Assembly: GCA_964247055.1 (NCBI GenBank)
Contig: OZ176052.1
Span: 12,710,001-12,774,000 of the forward strand
Direction: 5' to 3'
DNA length: 64,000 nucleotides
Origin: Paragordius varius
Lineage: Eukaryota > Animalia > Nematomorpha
The notes under the pieces: model-generated
What the model saw: only the letters and a program-made list of their open reading frames with translations
The model's database searches: none
What the model was told of the DNA's origin: nothing
Part shown: positions 22,300 through 46,400 of the stretch, piece by piece
Layout: the number at the start of each line of letters is the position of its first letter
Position numbering within the stretch: the first letter of the stretch is position 1
Program-made: the position numbers and the translations under genes

Positions 22300-25290
22300 T
22301 TAAGAAACTATTTTTCATGCAAAAACAACATTTTTTAACCAAGCGCAACATTTTTTCAAACAAACACCACATTTTTTTAAACAAAGATAACTTTTTCATC
22401 CAAACGTAACATTTTTTAAGCAAAACATTAATAAAAAATAATTTTTTTAAATTAAAACGATTTTTTTATTTTAACAATGCCATTTTATTTTAAGTTAATA
22501 TAATAAAATTTTATCATTGAATTATGATTTTTATTGTTTCATCAATTGATGGTAAATTGATTGATTTTCTAACATTTTAATTTTGCCCATAAATTTATTA
22601 TTTATTTATAATTATTTTTGTCTATTACAATTTTAGTTTCTTTAATCAATTTAAATTCGCGATTTAAGATGTGAAAGTTTAAAATTGTATTTCGCTTTGG
22701 TCCTTACATTATTGCAGTTATATAACCGTTATTTTTGTTCATAATTATCTATTTATTCAAGTTAAATCTAATATCTTTATATAATAGTATACCATTTGCA
22801 CTTCAAGAGTGTCCTTAAACACTTCAAGTTGGTCCTTGAACAATTTAAATTGGTCCTTGAACAGTTCAAGTTGGTCCTTGAACAGTTCAAGTTGGTCCTT
22901 GAACAGCTCAAGTTGGTGCTTGAACATTTCAGGTTGGTCCTTAAAATTTATAAATTTTGATTTAACCAAAATTTTTGCATTTATTTTTTAATTTTATTAT
23001 TTATTAACCTAATTTTCTTTATTTATTATATATTTATTCATTTAAAAATAAAAATTATTGAATAACCACTTTTTTGTTTCAAACTATTTTTTTCAATTGA
23101 ACAAAATTATTGACTTTTAAATGTTTTTAGTGAATTTTAATTAATAATCCATAAAACTTATATATTTTTTCGTTTCGTGCTAAATCTCATAAATATACCA
23201 TTTGCATTTCAAGAGTGTCCTTGAACACTTCAAGTTGGTCCTTTGACTTTTTTGTTTTGTTTTAAATTTTATCAATCAAATCGTAAATAATTCATCTATT
23301 TTATTTTTTTACCTATTTTCTATTATTTACATAAATTTTAAATCGATATAAACTTTTAATCTTTGAGAAACCGTATATCGTTTTTCTTAAAATAATTTTG
23401 GATATTTATAAGATTTAGCACGAAATGAAAAAATATATAAGTTTTCTGGGTTATTAATTAAAATCTTTTATTAAAAACATTTAAAAGTCAATAATTATGT
23501 TCAATTAGTGGTTTTTCAATAATTTTTATTTTTAAATTAATAAATATAATAAGTAAAGAAAATTAGATTAATAAATAATTAAATAATAAATGCAAAAATT
23601 TTGGTTAAATCAAAATTTATAAATTTTAAGGACCACCTTGAAGTGTTCAAGGACCAACTTGAAATGTTCAAGGACCATCTTGAAGTGTTCGAGGACACTC
23701 TTGCAAATGGTATAGATGAATTATTTACGATTTGATTGATAAAAATTAAAAACAAAACAAAAAAGTCAAAAGACCAACTTGAAGTGTTCAAGGACCAACT
23801 TGAAATGTTCAAGGACCAACTTGAAATGAAGGACCAACTTCAAGAGTGTTCAAAGACACTCTTGAAGTGTAAATGGTATATTGTTATATTAAAAATTAAT
23901 ATTCTCTTAGTAAAAACAACTTTATTTGTTTAGAACTAATTTTCTAAAATACTACAAGTGGTCCTTCAATATTTTAATTTTCATTCTAACTTTTATTAAT
24001 TAACCAATTAATTATTAATCTATCCTATCCTAAACCCACTTTATTTAACCTAAACTAAATACCATCTTTTTTTCATAAGAACCGTATATCTTAATTATTT
24101 TTTCTGAAATTTCTTTAACAATATATAATACTAAGATTTGTGGGATATTGATTATATTTAACTTAAAACATTAATAGTTAAATTAAAGAAAATTAGTTGG
24201 AAACAAATAAATGAATATATTAATTTTTTTTAAAAATACTAAATAAAGATTAGTTTAAATAAAAAAATAGATAATTTCATTACGAAAATAACGGTTGTAT
24301 GCAAGCTGCAAAAAATGTAAGAACCAATTTTAAGTGAAGGACTCTTTAAACTTTCTAAAACACTCTTGAAGCGCCAATCGTATAGATTAATCAGGTGAAA
24401 CTAAAGTTGTAAAAGAAAAAAATAATAATATAAATAAATAATGCAATTTATGGGCAAATTTAAAATGTTTAACAATTTACCATCAAATATTGATGATAAA
24501 ACAATAAATATCGTAATTACGCTAAAATTATATTATATAAACATAAAATTAAATAAATACTTTATAATTAAATTGTCATAAATAATTTTTAATTTTAAAA
24601 AATTGTTGTTTTGGTTGAAAAAATATTGCGTTTGTTTGAAAAATTTGTTTTTGCATGGTAATAAAGAATTAATGTAAAATTACAATCATTTACCCACATA
24701 GATCCTTTTAAGTATAGTTAAGTTTTTTTAGAAAATTATAAGGATATACGGTTTTTATGAAAAAAAGTTGGTACTCATTTAAAGGTTTAGAAATAAAGAG
24801 AATAGGTTTTAAATGATAGGATAGATGAATGTTTTATTGCTTCATTAATAAAAGTTAGAATCAAAATTATTATATGAAGGACCACTTGAAGTGTTCAAGG
24901 TCCAACTTCAAAAAAACTTCAAAAACATTCTTGAAGCGCAAATTGTATAGATTGATTATAGGCGAAACTAAACTTGTAAATAAAAATTACAAATAAATGA
25001 TGCAATTTATGGGCAAATTAAAATGTTTGAAAATCAATCTTACCATCAAATATTGATGTTAAATATAATTCAACGCTAAAACTTTATTATATTAACTTAA
25101 AAATATATAAATTAATATTAAATTGTCATTAAATAGAAAAACCCTTTTTAATTTTAAAAAAATTATTGTTTTTACTTAAAAAATTTGTTTTTGCTTAAAA
25201 AAATGTTGCGTTTGGATGAAAAAAGTTGTCTTTGGTTGAAAATATGTTGCGTTTGGTAGAAGCAATGTTGTTTTGCATGAAAAATGATAA
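22300..25290. mobile_element. Foldback element with ~22-bp minisatellite arms enclosing the nested family-A MITEs
   Basis: CCAAGCGCAACATTTTTT-type repeats at 22310-22430 are inverted relative to AAAAAATGTTGCGTTTGG repeats at 25180-25285 and 24600-24660. TTGCCCATAAATT (22582) pairs with AATTTATGGGCAA (24445 and 25004, so the right arm is duplicated). Confidence 0.7.
22788..23880. mobile_element. Two nested family-A MITEs: a forward copy (23194-23714) inside a reverse copy (22788-23880)
   Basis: Left TIRs at 22788 and 23194, right TIRs ending 23714 and 23880. 22788-23193 is the reverse complement of 23405-23714. 23715-23880 is the reverse complement of the start of the inner copy. Confidence 0.85.
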
Positions 25291-39301: not shown

Positions 39302-41063
39302 ATGACAGCAATAGCTCAACCCGAGAGCTGGGATATGATAGTTAAACGAACGCAAGTGACACTAGGTTATTTAATTTTTAACTTTTCTACATGTATTAGC
39401 TGTTTGATACACTATTTAACAAATTATTCCTAATTATTATCTCTATAAAACACAACATAGGTAAAGTTATTAAAAGGCCACCTCTACGCCCGGATCTGCT
39501 GCAAAAACCACCTTTTAGATTTATCTTTGATATAATTCATGAAGTTATAACTACTACAGGATTTTTTCATGGTAAATTTATTTATTTTTTAGATATTGTA
39601 TTTAGTTATAATAATATAAATCATTTCGTGCTTAAGCTATAAAACCGCATGGTTAACTTTTTGGGTGCGGTGGCTTGGCTTATAATAAGAGTCCCAATAT
39701 AAAATACGAATTTATGTATTAATCAATATGCAAAATTTTATTCCGATATTAATACAAGTATACCAAGCTGTCATGGAATCCCTAAGTTTATGGTTGTATT
39801 TAAATTTATGTTGAGGTGTTGGAACCATTTCAAGTGCTCTTAAAAATTAAAATATGTTGCAATCTCGTTAACAATTAGGTGATTCTTTGTTTAAACCCTT
39901 TCCAAAATTTTGTAAAACGAGAACAAACTACATTTTACTCTTAACTGCAAAATTAATTGAAAAAAAAACAATAATATATAAAGAAGAACCGGGGTGGTTT
40001 CTGAAGGCCTGATTCCTAAGAGTTTAAAAATAGAACCGGATTGATTTCCAAAATTTTGGAACCGGAATCGGGGTGGTTCCTGACCAAGTGGAACCGAAAC
40101 GGGTAAGTTCTTTAAATTAATGGTTCAACCTGTTCCATTTTGGTTCATGACTTTTCATTAATGATTTTCACACAAATTTTAAAAAGCAACTAAGCCAAAT
40201 GTATAAGTACAAAGTAGGTAATAAGTGTGTTTGATAAAATAATATTTTTGAATCTATGGCCAAAAAAACTTAGGCGCCGGATGCGGCTTGTGGATTGGGA
40301 AACGGGGTCGGTATTCATTGAAACTGGTTCCTGTTAAAATCTTAAGTCGGTCGGTTAGAAGCCATGATTTAAAACATACAATTTAATTATCTTTCATTTT
40401 TCAGAATATTTTGTAATAGCATATGAAAATATTACACTCTTTTCATTATACTAAAATTAGGGTTTCGCGTTTATAGTTAATTTCTAAGTTATTTAAAAAT
40501 TTTTTTTATTATTATTAATAAGTTGGACATAATGTTCATTACACCGAATAAAACTCTCATAGGATTAAAAAAATTAATGATTTTGTTTGTAATACCTGGT
40601 TAGCTATTTTACCAACATTAAGATACTTATATTTTTTCAGGTTTATACACGGATGCCGAATTAAATCCAGATTATTATCAGGATAGAGATACAAAAGCTT
40701 TATTTTTGGAAAAAGCTTTAGCCTGTGTAATTTTTACCAAAGGCCAAATGTTAAAAGCCAATCCTCTTAAGATTTTGGCTGGCTTGGAACCCGAAAGGAC
40801 AAATTCATTCTTACAAGCACTGGGTTTATATGATTTTAAAAAAATTGTGTATATTTCATTATTTGACTGGTTCATGTTATCATCTATTTTTTTTTTCATT
40901 GTAATAAGTTATAAAATTCGAATAATTAGAAGAAAATAATGAAACTCAAATATAAAAAAACAGGCTTTTATATAAAAATATTTTATTAGGAATATGCCTT
41001 TTGGAAGGATACGATAGCACAAATGCAGTTCAAAGAGTTCTTTCAGGCGAACGGCCGTTTTAA
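39302..41063 (+). CDS. TRAF3IP1: TRAF3IP1/IFT54 (MIP-T3) homolog, N-terminal calponin-homology domain only, 143 aa, 4 exons
   Basis: Exons 39302-39365, 39461-39571, 40641-40823, 40990-41063; all introns GT-AG and phase 1. Spliced protein: [143 protein letters not shown]. It matches the IFT54 N-terminus as remembered (VRRTQEALGKVIRRPPL..LLSKPPFRYLHDII.EVI..TGF..GLYTDAE...K..FL.KA....G..L.A.P..I.AG.EPERTN.LLQ.IG.C......AV.RVL.GE). TAA stop at 41061-41063; in-frame TAG upstream at 39284-39286. Confidence 0.93.
39985..40370. mobile_element. GGAACCG/GGTTCC-rich element remnant in IFT54 intron 2, possibly hAT-like
   Basis: GC-rich island with repeated GAACCG/GGTTCC motifs, ending CGGTCGGTTAGAAGCCATGATTT. 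No TSD verified. Confidence 0.4.
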
Positions 41064-41201
41064 ATCAATGATGCAGAAGTGCGCTCAATAATTTAATTGA
41101 TGGTCTGGCATTTTGTTTTTACCGTTATTTGAGAGAATAACAAATATTTTATGTTGTTTTATAATGATTATATATATATATATATATGTTTGAATCGTTT
41201 C

Positions 41202-41207
41202 AATAAA
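41202..41207 (+). promoter_or_regulatory. Candidate polyadenylation signal of the IFT54 transcript
   Basis: AATAAA about 140 nt after the TAA stop, followed by a GT-rich tract (41220-41265). Weak evidence in such an AT-rich genome. Confidence 0.35.
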
Positions 41208-41585
41208 TTAATATAACGTTCTTGTGTTTTAATTGCAAATAATGGTTTTTTATGTTTTTGTTTTCCTTATAAAATATCCAACAAAACTTCCTTATCTTAA
41301 GGAACTATCTCAAATCTGTCATGTCAAAATTTGGCTTTCTTCTACAAATGAAATCACAAGAGATTTGCCAATTGCAATTTTAAGATAATACTTTTTACTT
41401 TATTATCGAAATATGTTTAATTCTTTGGACATACATTTAAAATATGTTTTTCCACATTTTTTCAAATTTTATATTGCCACAATTACAAGAGTATTTATAA
41501 ATATTAAATTTAAATCCTGTTTATAAATTGTTGGCCTTATATTATAATTTCCTTACAACCACATTGATAAAAATATTTTGCACTA

Positions 41586-41652
41586 ATGCGGATTTTTATC
41601 CTACTTTTTGTCTTGAGCGGATATTTGAAACTTCATGGGGAAGATGTGCAAC
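41586..41652 (+). CDS. LLTP exon 1, predicted signal peptide
   Basis: MRIFILLFVLSGYLKLHG-EDVQ: a basic N-terminus and hydrophobic core, followed by a GTAACA donor. Phase 1 joins the YAG acceptor at 41746. Confidence 0.75.
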
Positions 41653-43366
41653 GTAACATTTTTTTAAATATTTTTAGAGCTGACTCAAAAACTTAGTAAA
41701 GAGAGTTGTTATATCCCAAGTATGATTTAATTAACTATTTTGTAGATTCACTTTTTGAGTATGGGTATACATATGAATACTCTTTAAATTTTAATGTTTC
41801 TAATCGATTCGTTGTCCAAATCATAAATGAAACGGCTAGTCATGAAATTTATGGCAAATGTTTGCTAACACTCAGTGTGGGAAAACAGTGTTTACACAAA
41901 TTAATGGTATAAACATATGAACAAATTTAACCAAAATAACTAGAAATTTTGCTTTATTTTTTTACCTTATTCGATTGTAATTTTAATTAACCCTTGCATA
42001 CAATTCCCCATGCATTTAATACGAATTGTATTGACATTTAAAATTAAATGGCTAAATATAAAGGCAAAAAATTAGACTATGTTCAAAAGGTGCAAGAACT
42101 AAATATAAAGATAATACTATTAATACCCTTTAAAGCACTTAAGTTTTTATTGTTACTCAATGTATTTAACTGAATTTTTAACGTATATAAATCATTATTA
42201 TTTTTATTTCTAATTTTATATTGGGACAGCCTTTTTTATTCTTATGATATAATCTATATTGATTTGGGGTAAATAGTTACTCCAATTAGAAGAGTTAAAG
42301 GAGAAAAATGTTGGCAGCTAAATTAATGATTAAATTTTATTACCTAATTTTTATGCCCTGATAATCTTACAGCGTATTAATACTTATGTGACAAAATTCA
42401 GATAAAAATGGGTTATTTTCAAGTTTTTGTATGCTAATAATAAATGAATGGCTTTGACTTTTTATATAAAAGGGAAGTCTTCCAAAATGTACAAAAGGTC
42501 TCCTCAAATTAGCTGTATATATATACTCATGTGTCAAACTTAAGGGTCCGTGTGTACGTTTCAGAAATTATAGAATGAGGAGCTTTTGAGGGAAATGTTA
42601 AGAATTAGCGCCTATAAGAGAAATTTCAAAATAATTCGCCAAATAACTTATTATAAAATACCAAAATTAAACATGAAGGGAAACGCTTGAAAATTTATAT
42701 ATTTATGATAATATTAATTAAAACAAAACCCAAAGAAGTCTTAATAATTTTTATTTTTTGAAAGCATTAAGGAATTTTATTAGGTCGAATTTTGGGGACT
42801 GAAGTTAATAGCAAAAACATGTGTATATTAACATATTTCAATTAAATGTTAATTTAAAAAACTTTTCAAAGATTAAAACCGTGCACAAACAGCTAAGTGA
42901 TTATCGTATATAAAAACCAGCATATAGTTAAAACACATGAACTATGGTTTGCATTTCAAACACACAAAAATAAAAATTATCCTTGCTTCTACGTTATCTT
43001 GATGTAGGGAGGGACACAAACTTTATTAAAATTATAATTTACATTTTGATTAAAATACTAATTATTATGGAATTGACTCTAGTTAATGCGATATAAAATG
43101 TTAAAAGTAAAACCTCTAAAATATAAAATACACTTAATTTAAATTTCATTGTGACTTATAACTTTTTACATGCGTAATACTAGTATAAATATATGATAAA
43201 AATTAGAGGCATTTTCCTTCAAGCTCTAATGGGTTAAAATCACCTATGTACATTGATTTTTGCATTTATTTTTTATATATGACTTCAAAACATTTTTTAA
43301 TTTGAAATCCTGTCAATCTATCTAAAATATGATTTCAACACATTCAAACGGATCCCAAAGTTTGGC

Positions 43367-43401
<35 letters not shown>

Positions 43402-46400
43402 CCATATTTTTATTAAATAAACTTCTATTGATTATTTTTGAAAAAGCAGGATGCTGATTATTTACCACCTTTATAAACTCATATTTTAAATTACTAGAAA
43501 AAATTTAGCTATTCGTACATTGGCATCATCTTTCTTAAATGAACTTATAAAATTATAAAGAAAATTTGGTTTAGATAAAATATCCGCCTTTTTGGCTGTT
43601 GTAGCGGTAAAAATAAAATTTATAATTTAAAGATTTTTTTATATTGGAAGAGATACAACCATTAAATGATGAAAAATAATATATCCCTTGAACAATTCAA
43701 ATTCACCCTCGAACAATTCAAATTCACCCTAAAAATAAATTAGGTGTTTTCAAACTAATATAATTCATTATTAATGTGAAATATATCTTTATGGCATAGT
43801 TTATTATTTTTTCAGTATTATTTTAATTTAAAATATAATTTTTATTCTTTAAAAATATAAAAAATATAGGTAATTTTTAATCTAAAAAATCATATATTTT
43901 ATATAAGGGTGAATTTGAATTGTTTGAGGGGAATATGAATTGTTCAAGGGTGAATTTGAATCTAAATGATATATATTTTCATTTGTTACCCGGTTAAAAT
44001 TACTAAACTGGTTAAAAGGTACAGGATAATAATTTATATCTAAAAAATTGAGATATAGATTTTTTAGAATGTAGTGTTTAAGCCGGTTTATTCATATCAA
44101 TTTCTCACTCTAAAGCATCAATGTAATAAATACTATTTATGTATTATAAAACAAGTTTAAAACCTGTACGGCTTCCCAAGTAACTCATGAATTTCAAATT
44201 CATCCCCAAACAGTCGATATAACTGAAATATTTGCTACATTGGAAAAGTATTTATTTTAAACGTTCTATATAATCTAATATTTTAAAAGGTTTTCGTATA
44301 AATTAATAGAGAATAAATTATATTTTTTTAGATGATTGTATTTTTTGAAAAATGGTTATTAATATAGATTATATTCTGTGAAACAGGTGAGTGAAACCAG
44401 AGATAACTATTTTTAGACTCTTTTTAACCTTTAGATGTATTCAAAAAGGTTCAATTTTGACTAAATTTATTAATTAAGTTATAAACTAATATAAATAACC
44501 ATAAAATATTCAATCAATATTCGGAAATTATTAGATCCATTTTATTAAAAAGGTCGGAAATTATATTTCAAACAAATAAGAATGAGGTATCCCACGTTTT
44601 TCATTCTCCAAATGATGGGACAGACATCGTGAATTTTAAAAAATCCATTGCTTCTGCAATATGGATAACAAATGACATTGATGGATTGACTGCTAAACCT
44701 CAAAAATTGGTAACAATAGCTTTAGTTTTTCTTCAAACTATTATAAATAGCCTTTAAATAATTTTATGAAATATTTAGCGGGACATTCGTGGTACTTGTC
44801 TAACTGTCCATGCATCGGATCAATATGCAAGCAATTCCTCCAAGGACGAGGTTAACCTGTACCGAAGAAAATTGGGGTCTACATGTGAACAAAATGAGTT
44901 CGCCAAAAACACATTTCCTCAATCGCCCTTTAATAAAAACAATATACAGGTATAATATAATATAAATCATACAAACTTTTTCTATCAATAATTTTTTTTT
45001 GTTGAAATTAAAATATGCATAACATATAAATAGGCGAATTATACCTTTTTTTGCGAAAGTATTTATTACATTTACAAAAGATGTTGGTCAATGCATTTAC
45101 TCAACAAAACATCCTTTGTCAATACACAATAAAAAAATCCGAAAAATCACTAACATTCATTAATTGCACAGAAACATATTTGACATCTGCGTTGGGAAGT
45201 GTTGCAGTTGCAAAGTAAAAATTGTTTAATATACTAATGACATGTTACAGGGGTCACCAGCATAAATAGTGTCACGGGCCGTCTTTTTATCTAAAAAACG
45301 GTTAACCGATTATGAAAAAAGGAACATTAATAAAAGTTTTATTAGAGTTCAAACATCATACTGTAAAAAATGCAAAAAATATAACTACTAATTATTTAAT
45401 TAGTTTTTGCTGTTAGTTCATGGCCAATGGGGAGGATTTATTTAAAAATTTGTTTAGAATTCAATTTACTTTGAACAGCCGCAATCGCCCTGCGGGCCGT
45501 GGACACCCCTATTTTGATATATATTATTTTAGTGGCGTTGTGTTAATTTTAAAGTTTGTCAAATCAATATTATTTAAACAATCTAACCCCTAATATTATG
45601 ATAAAAGCATAGTGACAAATAAATATAAAATAATTTAATTATGTCCGATTTTAGGCTTTAGTAGTAATGTGTATTAATTACAATGAAGACAATAACTAAA
45701 AATGCGTATAATATTTTTTTTCATGAGGCAAATCATTTATAACATTTGGTCATAGTTTTACCATTTTTTTATTATTAAAATAATATTAAAATAATTATAG
45801 TACATATGCAACCAAGTGCCGCATGCGGTTCCTAAGATATGATTTTATGGCGAAGTATAAATAATAAAAGTGATGGAGTTTTAACCAAATAAGGGTCATT
45901 AAAAATTATAACTTATTTTATTTTCTGTTTTTTCTCTTTACCATAAAAATTAAGTTTATCTAAGGTACACACTCAACCCATATCCTCTATAAGGGGACTA
46001 TGCAACAAAATTAAAATAAAATAAAAAATTTTAATTTTCACTTGGTTAAAGAATTTGCCATTTCGATATTGTGATTCAATAAATTTTTTAGTATTCTCTG
46101 TTCCACCACTAAAAGAAATTCTAGACTCCTTATTTGCTTCAAATTTGAGAGTTTCAGGCAATATTTTTATGATTAAAAATTTTTTCAGTAGAATATTAAT
46201 GATGTTCATTTCCGAACAATAACGAACAACCGACATTATATATCATAAATTACTACTTTTATTTACTGGCCCCTTATTGGATAGGAATATTAGTCTCAAG
46301 AAATTTTTCTGGTGTGTTAATTTGTTAAATTAGGTTCGATCACTTTCCTGAGCATTGAAGAATGCAAGGCATATTCTATTTTTCTATATATTTATGGAAG

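Follow-up and report, generated by a model that had tools for sequence, protein, structure and literature searches.

An IFT54 reduced to its CH domain and apparently maintained by purifying selection in the horsehair worm Paragordius varius

What can a protein of intraflagellar transport (IFT) still do in an animal that has lost most of its cilium genes? IFT54, also known as TRAF3IP1 or MIP-T3, is one of the genes behind human ciliopathies, and the non-ciliary role proposed for it, acting through MAP4 on cytoplasmic microtubule stability, is hard to separate from cilium assembly. The question is raised by a gene at positions 39302-41063 on the forward strand of a 64,000-nucleotide stretch of the Paragordius varius genome (contig OZ176052.1, positions 12,710,001 to 12,774,000; hereafter the window), which encodes the N-terminal CH domain of IFT54 and then stops. 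The phylum, Nematomorpha, is described as one whose members ‘lack most ciliary genes’ (PMC12094185). We consider it likely that the locus is a real, selected gene for a stand-alone IFT54/TRAF3IP1 CH domain of 143 residues, serving as a cytoplasmic tubulin- or microtubule-associated factor. The conserved head of IFT54 has probably kept a function in an animal without most cilium genes.

A preliminary description of the locus had reported an intact four-exon reading frame with canonical introns that meets a TAA after 143 codons, and its coordinates and account proved correct when compared with the translations, the GT-AG borders and Pfam. The joined exons amount to 432 nt, that is, 143 codons plus the TAA at 41061-41063, and are arranged as follows:

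39302..39365, forward strand: exon 1, with the ATG, 21 codons and the opening base of a Gly codon interrupted by the intron; N-terminal lead-in and start of helix 1
39461..39571, forward strand: exon 2, part 1 of the CH domain; it includes KPPFRF and positions 18, 25, 29 and 33 of the basic patch
39572..40640, forward strand: intron 2, 1069 nt, phase 1, splice sites ATG/GTAAAT ... TTTTCAG/G, apparently containing a dispersed repeat, at about 39885-40278
40641..40823, forward strand: exon 3, part 2 of the CH domain, with the GLEPERTN motif and basic-patch positions 64, 66, 69 and 94
40990..41063, forward strand: exon 4, the final two CH helices, TAA stop included

The three introns (95, 1069 and 166 nt) are all of the GT-AG type and all in phase 1, each splitting a Gly codon; the exon 1 donor reads TAG/GTTATT, and six codons before the ATG at 39302 there is an in-frame TAG. 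The window is AT-rich along its whole length (17-28% GC). The Pfam family MIP-T3 CH-like (PF10243) matches exon 2 over profile positions 11-44 (E 1.1e-11) and exon 3 over positions 48-107 (E 5e-16), in both cases above the curated cut-off. The frame is a complete MIP-T3/IFT54 CH domain that ends at the domain boundary: the protein finishes two residues past the counterpart of human K133, where a GE(K/R)P motif is shared by eukaryotes at large.

A search with exon 3 against 1.84 billion representative proteins returned 297 matches. The best of them, 78% identical and 122 residues long, comes with its relatives from another horsehair worm, Gordionus sp. m RMFG-2023; the others are at most 59% identical, and those checked by name are IFT54/TRAF3IP1/MIP-T3 proteins of animals, a chytrid and an alga. 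By these matches the nearest relatives of the window's domain are IFT54 proteins, which supports orthology. The Gordionus gene models, which derive from RNA-seq-supported annotation, include a 151-residue protein named ‘TRAF3-interacting protein 1-like’ (here P0151; XP_065321273.1 / CAK9302527.1), a 122-residue isoform of it with intron 3 retained (P0001), and the 145-residue product of a second gene (P0153). The P0153 and P0151 genes lie about 10 kb apart on one strand of OX940786.2, and both have four exons, with intron codons and phases identical to those of the window gene. Identity to the Gordionus orthologue at locus L011 is 95% for exon 1 (19 residues), 90.6% for exon 3 and 88% for exon 4. 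Between the two intact genes lies a third copy (L009, 17118-17904, OX940786.2) with in-frame stops and frameshifts; the Gordionus tandem array therefore comprises two live genes and one dead gene, and the Paragordius varius genome has a single gene.

The TAA at the end of exon 4 could be examined in the DNA contigs of two public Paragordius varius runs, which cover the region and include a second haplotype. An allelic contig (X2 record 11, 277 nt, 40964-41251) shows four base differences, at 41079, 41120, 41150 and 41154, together with 11 gapped letters. Since the listed differences all lie downstream of the stop, that allele keeps the TAA, and the base-call error against which the preliminary description had advised a check is not supported by this contig. 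In Gordionus, P0153 ends ...SGERPY and then TAA, at the identical codon, and P0151 runs six codons past that position. The hairworm context suggested earlier is borne out by this nearest relative, with a stop conserved across genera. Judged from these comparisons, the truncation is old and under selection, and would be neither an assembly error nor a decaying copy. The idea of an alternative genetic code with TAA as a sense codon, suggested by the 23% GC content, was also considered and rejected, as the Gordionus orthologues stop at the same place or nearby and read-through yields unrelated sequence.

Does the gene really end here? Two features downstream of the stop bear on this:

41202..41207, forward strand: candidate poly(A) signal AATAAA, 139 nt past the stop; the Gordionus copies have theirs 132 and 179 nt past their stops
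41586..41909, forward strand: probable start of the next gene, an open reading frame with a signal-peptide-like start and ‘FEYGYTYEYS’ within 41700-41909

The poly(A) signal had been placed about 140 nt past the TAA, and the motif is indeed there, but at 23% GC an AATAAA is expected about once per 300 nt, so that the one at 41202 is near chance and counts as weak evidence. The next gene, said to begin 522 nt downstream, is plausible in view of the frame at 41586, its start being a prediction. A full-length gene would have to reach divergent linker and tail exons through the weak CC/GTTTTA donor at 41057, which the preliminary description had itself singled out, or through a 20-nt micro-intron (41057-41076) that excises the TAA. 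The GT at 41057 and the AG at 41075-41076 could bound such an intron, and the IFT54 linker is of low complexity and beyond recognition by homology. However, the micro-intron is not conserved in Gordionus, where both genes lack the GT of 41057 and read AGACCATAT at that site, and its removal would give merely 20 unrelated residues before another TAA. The identical stop codon of P0153, the allelic differences and 11 gapped letters that begin right after the window stop, and the signal-peptide start of the next gene at 41586 all argue against a longer product, as does the failure to find an exon for the C-terminal domain in the window or the genome. We regard a full-length gene as very improbable.

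A PF10243 search of the 110.56-Mb genome found one locus only, that of the window (61 and 50 bits), which leaves unsupported the alternative, raised in the preliminary description, of a truncated paralogue beside a full-length gene. Three queries for the rest of IFT54 failed across the whole genome: the Pfam profile for the IFT20-binding coiled coil (MIP-T3_C, PF17749) gave nothing at E<=10, the C-terminal 180 residues of Anopheles IFT54 returned a single match, unrelated, at E=2 on another contig, and a custom profile of 21 IFT54 C-termini gave nothing. A local hidden Markov model of the C-terminal domain, run in six frames over the whole window and over both Gordionus loci with 10 kb on each side, scored no better than E 5.9 (23736-23930, upstream of the gene). 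As a control for this model, the final ~115 residues of eight held-out IFT54 proteins were cut into pieces of 35 residues (the last per protein longer), and 24 of 24 pieces were detected, with E values from 1e-16 to 2e-4 at the same database size. The view that this is a CH-only IFT54, with neither room nor exons for the coiled coil, thus stands.

The same genome lacks recognizable partners for the missing half. The IFT20 profile reached at best 17.5 bits (cut-off 27) and the IFT57 profile 15.6 bits (cut-off 40), the Cluap1 profile matched nothing, and none of IFT46, IFT81_CH, Tektin and IFT52_GIFT rose above its curated cut-off in the genome. A reciprocal-BLAST presence table from 2025 for the hairworms Acutogordius and Nectonema (PMC12094185 Table S1B) agrees, with IFT20 absent in both and IFT57 and CLUAP1 absent in Acutogordius. 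Since the C-terminal coiled coil, IFT20, IFT57 and CLUAP1 were not found, the product cannot join IFT-B, as had been proposed from the window.

Selection was assessed by a Nei-Gojobori count, exon by exon, with a Fisher test. Between the window gene and the P0153 gene (87.9% amino acid identity), pN is 0.079 and pS 0.868, which is saturated (Fisher p 2e-49); between the window gene and the P0151 gene (79%), pN is 0.133 and pS 0.818 (p 2e-35). The Gordionus paralogues, 88% identical to each other, give pN 0.058, pS 0.275 and a dN/dS of 0.18 (p 4e-8). Because pS between the genera (0.87) is beyond saturation, pN, pS and the Fisher test are used there in place of a dN/dS ratio, with a pN/pS of 0.09. 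Neutral dN/dS, by which the preliminary description would have recognized an ordinary truncated duplicate, is contradicted by these values. Within the species, the coding variants at 39516 (T>C, exon 2), 40723, 40747 and 40768 (exon 3) are synonymous third-position changes in four of four cases, among the variants listed. Furthermore, the hairworm CH domain is 47-53% identical to that of mosquito, snail and chytrid IFT54, and those three are 50-52% identical to one another; the near equality of these figures indicates that the domain did not accelerate after losing its IFT context. On these counts the gene is real and maintained by purifying selection, which would rule out a decaying relic.

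A dead IFT54 fragment still awaiting decay would suit an animal group that has lost most cilium genes, in which one Gordionus copy has in fact decayed, and we infer rather than observe expression of the window gene in Paragordius varius. Nevertheless, three genes from two genera all have an intact frame, start, six splice sites and stop position, and 88% of residues are kept despite saturated synonymous sites. Conservation extends to I17 and V125, core positions at which mutation unfolds the human domain, and the polymorphisms are synonymous only, among the variants listed. Frame disruptions, intron loss and neutral substitution would mark a pseudogene; what is found is an intact frame, three conserved introns and the low between-genera pN/pS given above, in contrast to the decayed third Gordionus copy, which exemplifies decay without constraint. 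We assign the relic hardly any probability, less even than the full-length gene.

Fold and Protein Data Bank (PDB) comparisons were done on the Gordionus proxies (P0153, 88% identical, and P0151), and the window exons were searched singly. Residues 15-143 of P0151 align to the CH constructs 2EQO (human) and 5FMU (mouse) through their last residue (E ~1e-36). The AlphaFold model of P0153 is all-helical with a mean pLDDT of 88.5, and in Foldseek it superposes on 5FMU with a TM of 0.86-0.95, an rmsd of 0.6-1.2 A and E 1e-11. A classical actin-binding CH domain of the calponin, alpha-actinin or parvin type was rejected, the same model matching parvin, plastin and actinin CH domains only at E ~1, TM 0.4-0.5 and 14-19% identity. 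Contact between the CH domain of IFT54 and tubulin is made by a basic patch, in which R18E, K25E, K29E, R33E and R94E are tolerated (Taschner 2016, PMC4818760) and the triple change KKK64/66/69EEE abolishes tubulin binding of the mouse domain (PMC4818760). In the window protein six of the eight patch positions remain basic (R18K, K29K, R33R, K66R, K69K and R94K kept; K25D and K64Q lost), including two of the three in the critical triple. Mutation of I17 and V125 unfolds the human IFT54 CH domain (PMC4617596), and the equivalents of both are conserved in the alignment of the window protein.

These features suggest what the protein may do. In humans the CH domain (1-133) is soluble alone, and the protein made from the p.R155* allele binds MAP4 and not IFT20 (Bizet 2015, PMC4617596); IFT54 restrains cytoplasmic microtubule stability through MAP4 (PMC4617596), and IFT54(1-134) suffices to bind the dynein-2 intermediate chain WDR60 (Hiyamizu 2023, PMC10110421). 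We propose that hairworm IFT54 lost the half that anchors it in IFT-B, in a lineage from which IFT20, IFT57 and CLUAP1 would have gone as well, and that what was left is an autonomous folding unit of the kind that elsewhere binds tubulin and microtubules and, in human cells, MAP4 and WDR60. It would then act as a free cytoplasmic binder of tubulin, microtubules or microtubule-associated proteins, possibly modulating a protein of the MAP2/MAP4/tau type. Tubulin itself is present in the genome. We also observed a MAP2/MAP4/tau-type gene (G000:C6:2854030-2855570, reverse strand; loci L031 and L032), with two tubulin-binding repeats above the Pfam cut-off. By analogy with human IFT54 and MAP4, its product is a candidate partner of the CH domain.

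The main rival to a free cytoplasmic binder is that the CH-only protein works with leftover IFT and dynein-2-like proteins, either in a cryptic cilium or in a transport module outside cilia. Leftovers do exist. The table for Acutogordius lists TRAF3IP1 (g5245.t1), KIF3A/B, KAP3, IFT140, WDR19, IFT52, IFT88 and IFT172 as present; Nectonema has more IFT genes than Acutogordius, but its TRAF3IP1 is absent (PMC12094185 Table S1B). In the Paragordius varius genome we observed an IFT140-like locus (G000:C4:8779347-8779765, forward strand; L025), with two adjacent exon matches to TPR_IF140-IFT172 just above the cut-off; its best PDB match is IFT140 (E 1e-4), which fits the published retention of IFT140 in hairworms. 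The genome has two dynein heavy-chain loci only: cytoplasmic dynein 1 (C5:4.2235-4.2265 Mb) and a second, highly diverged gene at G000:C5:~5771000-5774300, on the reverse strand (loci L016, L021, L023, L028 and L029), whose AAA1 frame matches human DYNC2H1 best (E 4e-12). Together with the ability of human residues 1-134 to bind WDR60 (PMC10110421), these would give a CH-only protein something to work with.

Against such cooperation, both published hairworms are listed as without IFT20, all dynein-2 subunits (DYNC2H1, DYNC2LI1, WDR60 and WDR34) and every axonemal set (PMC12094185 Table S1B), and IFT52_GIFT was not found in the Paragordius varius genome. The class of the second dynein is marginal: AAA1 narrowly favours dynein-2 (49 bits vs 45 bits for an outer-arm beta chain), its DHC_N2 piece has as its best, weak match the axonemal dyneins, and two further frames match nothing in the PDB. 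Moreover, without the coiled coil and IFT20, IFT57 and IFT38, no known interface links IFT54 to IFT-B. We therefore think cooperation with leftover IFT proteins unlikely. Rather more doubtful is a particular form of it, a gordiid cilium-independent IFT remnant with the CH-only IFT54 as its tubulin-facing piece alongside the IFT140-like protein, kinesin-2 and the dynein-2-like heavy chain; if true, it would be a natural separation of function, revealing parts of IFT with an ancestral non-ciliary job. The suggestion in the preliminary description that the protein has been released from IFT is hence likely, though not the sole reading, given the leftovers in the published tables and the IFT140-like locus.

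Several points weigh against our preferred reading of a selected, free cytoplasmic microtubule-associated protein. The absence calls come from exon-wise six-frame searches in a genome of 23% GC, with 110 Mb compared with 200-300 Mb in published hairworm genomes. Expression of the window gene in Paragordius varius, and its 3' end, we infer. The synonymous-only pattern of variation is suggestive, as it covers the variants listed and non-synonymous alleles may exist beyond them. Within the tubulin-binding patch, K64 has become Gln and K25 Asp, and the net charge of the domain is about +1, compared with +2 to +4 in three ordinary IFT54 CH domains. With these residues lost and the charge lowered, affinity for tubulin may be lower or retargeted.

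The surroundings of the gene provide limited further context. The frame at 41586 opens what appears to be a large multi-exon gene on the forward strand that follows the IFT54-CH gene and extends beyond 63300. It carries the lipoprotein-N-like ‘FEYGYTYEYS’ and a weak Vitellogenin_N match at 44485-44754 (E 0.03), and probably encodes a large secreted lipoprotein or vitellogenin-like protein. In Gordionus, too, a vitellogenin-like gene comes after P0153, so that synteny is hinted at through this neighbour by the weak Pfam match and the motif; a tblastn search of the window with the Gordionus upstream Iso_dh gene and downstream vitellogenin-like gene gave no significant match. Within intron 2, the segment at 39885-40278 has a contig depth 3-5x that of its flanks and recurring GGAACCG/GGTTCC-rich motifs. 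It looks like a dispersed repeat inserted into the intron, which would explain its 1069 nt against 90 and 76 nt at the same position in Gordionus. Further downstream, 43628-44021 is foldback-like, with tandem ~22-nt GAACAATTCAAATTCACCCT-like units at 43685-43730 facing their inverted complement at ~43905-43960. Its contig word depth is in the millions, the flanks having a few hundred; rearranged joints are numerous, and the element has the look of a repeat or satellite-like family of extreme abundance.

Part of this picture is already on record, since the proteins have database entries and TRAF3IP1 is marked ‘present’ in the Acutogordius table (PMC12094185). The CH-only architecture is not mentioned in that table, and no paper came up in a full-text search combining TRAF3IP1 with Nematomorpha. 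What is new is that IFT54 was pruned at the level of a domain, that the pruned form is conserved across genera and that constraint on the domain is unchanged. Presence and absence tables of cilium genes hide pruning of this kind, which is of relevance to cilium and cytoskeleton biology. Hairworms appear to have separated the roles of IFT54 by discarding the IFT-B-anchoring half and the IFT-B2 partners while constraint on the CH domain stayed equal to that in ciliated organisms. Should this protein prove to be expressed and to bind tubulin or a MAP/tau protein, the eukaryote-wide conservation of this domain would not be due to ciliary tubulin transport alone, and hairworms would offer a minimal natural protein for studying the non-ciliary activity.

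The window protein is best understood by comparison with systems already known. Its closest counterparts, the Gordionus proteins, share its CH-only architecture, its intron positions and, in the 145-residue copy, its stop position, at 88% identity for that copy and 79% for the 151-residue copy; they differ in forming two intact and one decayed tandem copy as opposed to a single locus, and in the six additional C-terminal residues of the 151-residue copy. Other orphaned IFT genes of Nematomorpha (IFT140, WDR19, IFT172, IFT88, IFT52 and kinesin-2) are likewise IFT-derived and retained, and persist in the absence of the axoneme, transition-zone and dynein-2 genes and of most IFT-B genes (PMC12094185). 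Those are listed as whole-gene retentions, whereas here one domain has been kept and the complex-forming part removed. Full-length IFT54/TRAF3IP1/MIP-T3 (DYF-11, Elipsa), a member of IFT-B2, has an orthologous CH domain, about 50% identical in human, mosquito and snail, and has the hydrophobic core residues and the fold (TM 0.86-0.95 to 5FMU) in common with the window protein, which stays basic at six of the eight patch positions. It is ~500-700 residues long rather than 143, and the window protein lacks both its linker of 300-500 residues and MIP-T3_C, the coiled coil that serves to bind IFT20 and DYNC2H1-DYNC2LI1. Nearest in extent are the recombinant human and mouse CH(1-133) and the human p.R155* allele, whose boundaries are nearly identical to those of the hairworm protein. 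The human fragments fold alone and bind tubulin, MAP4 and WDR60, and not IFT20. They are artificial or disease forms in ciliated cells, whereas the hairworm form is the sole, fixed and lineage-conserved version of the protein.

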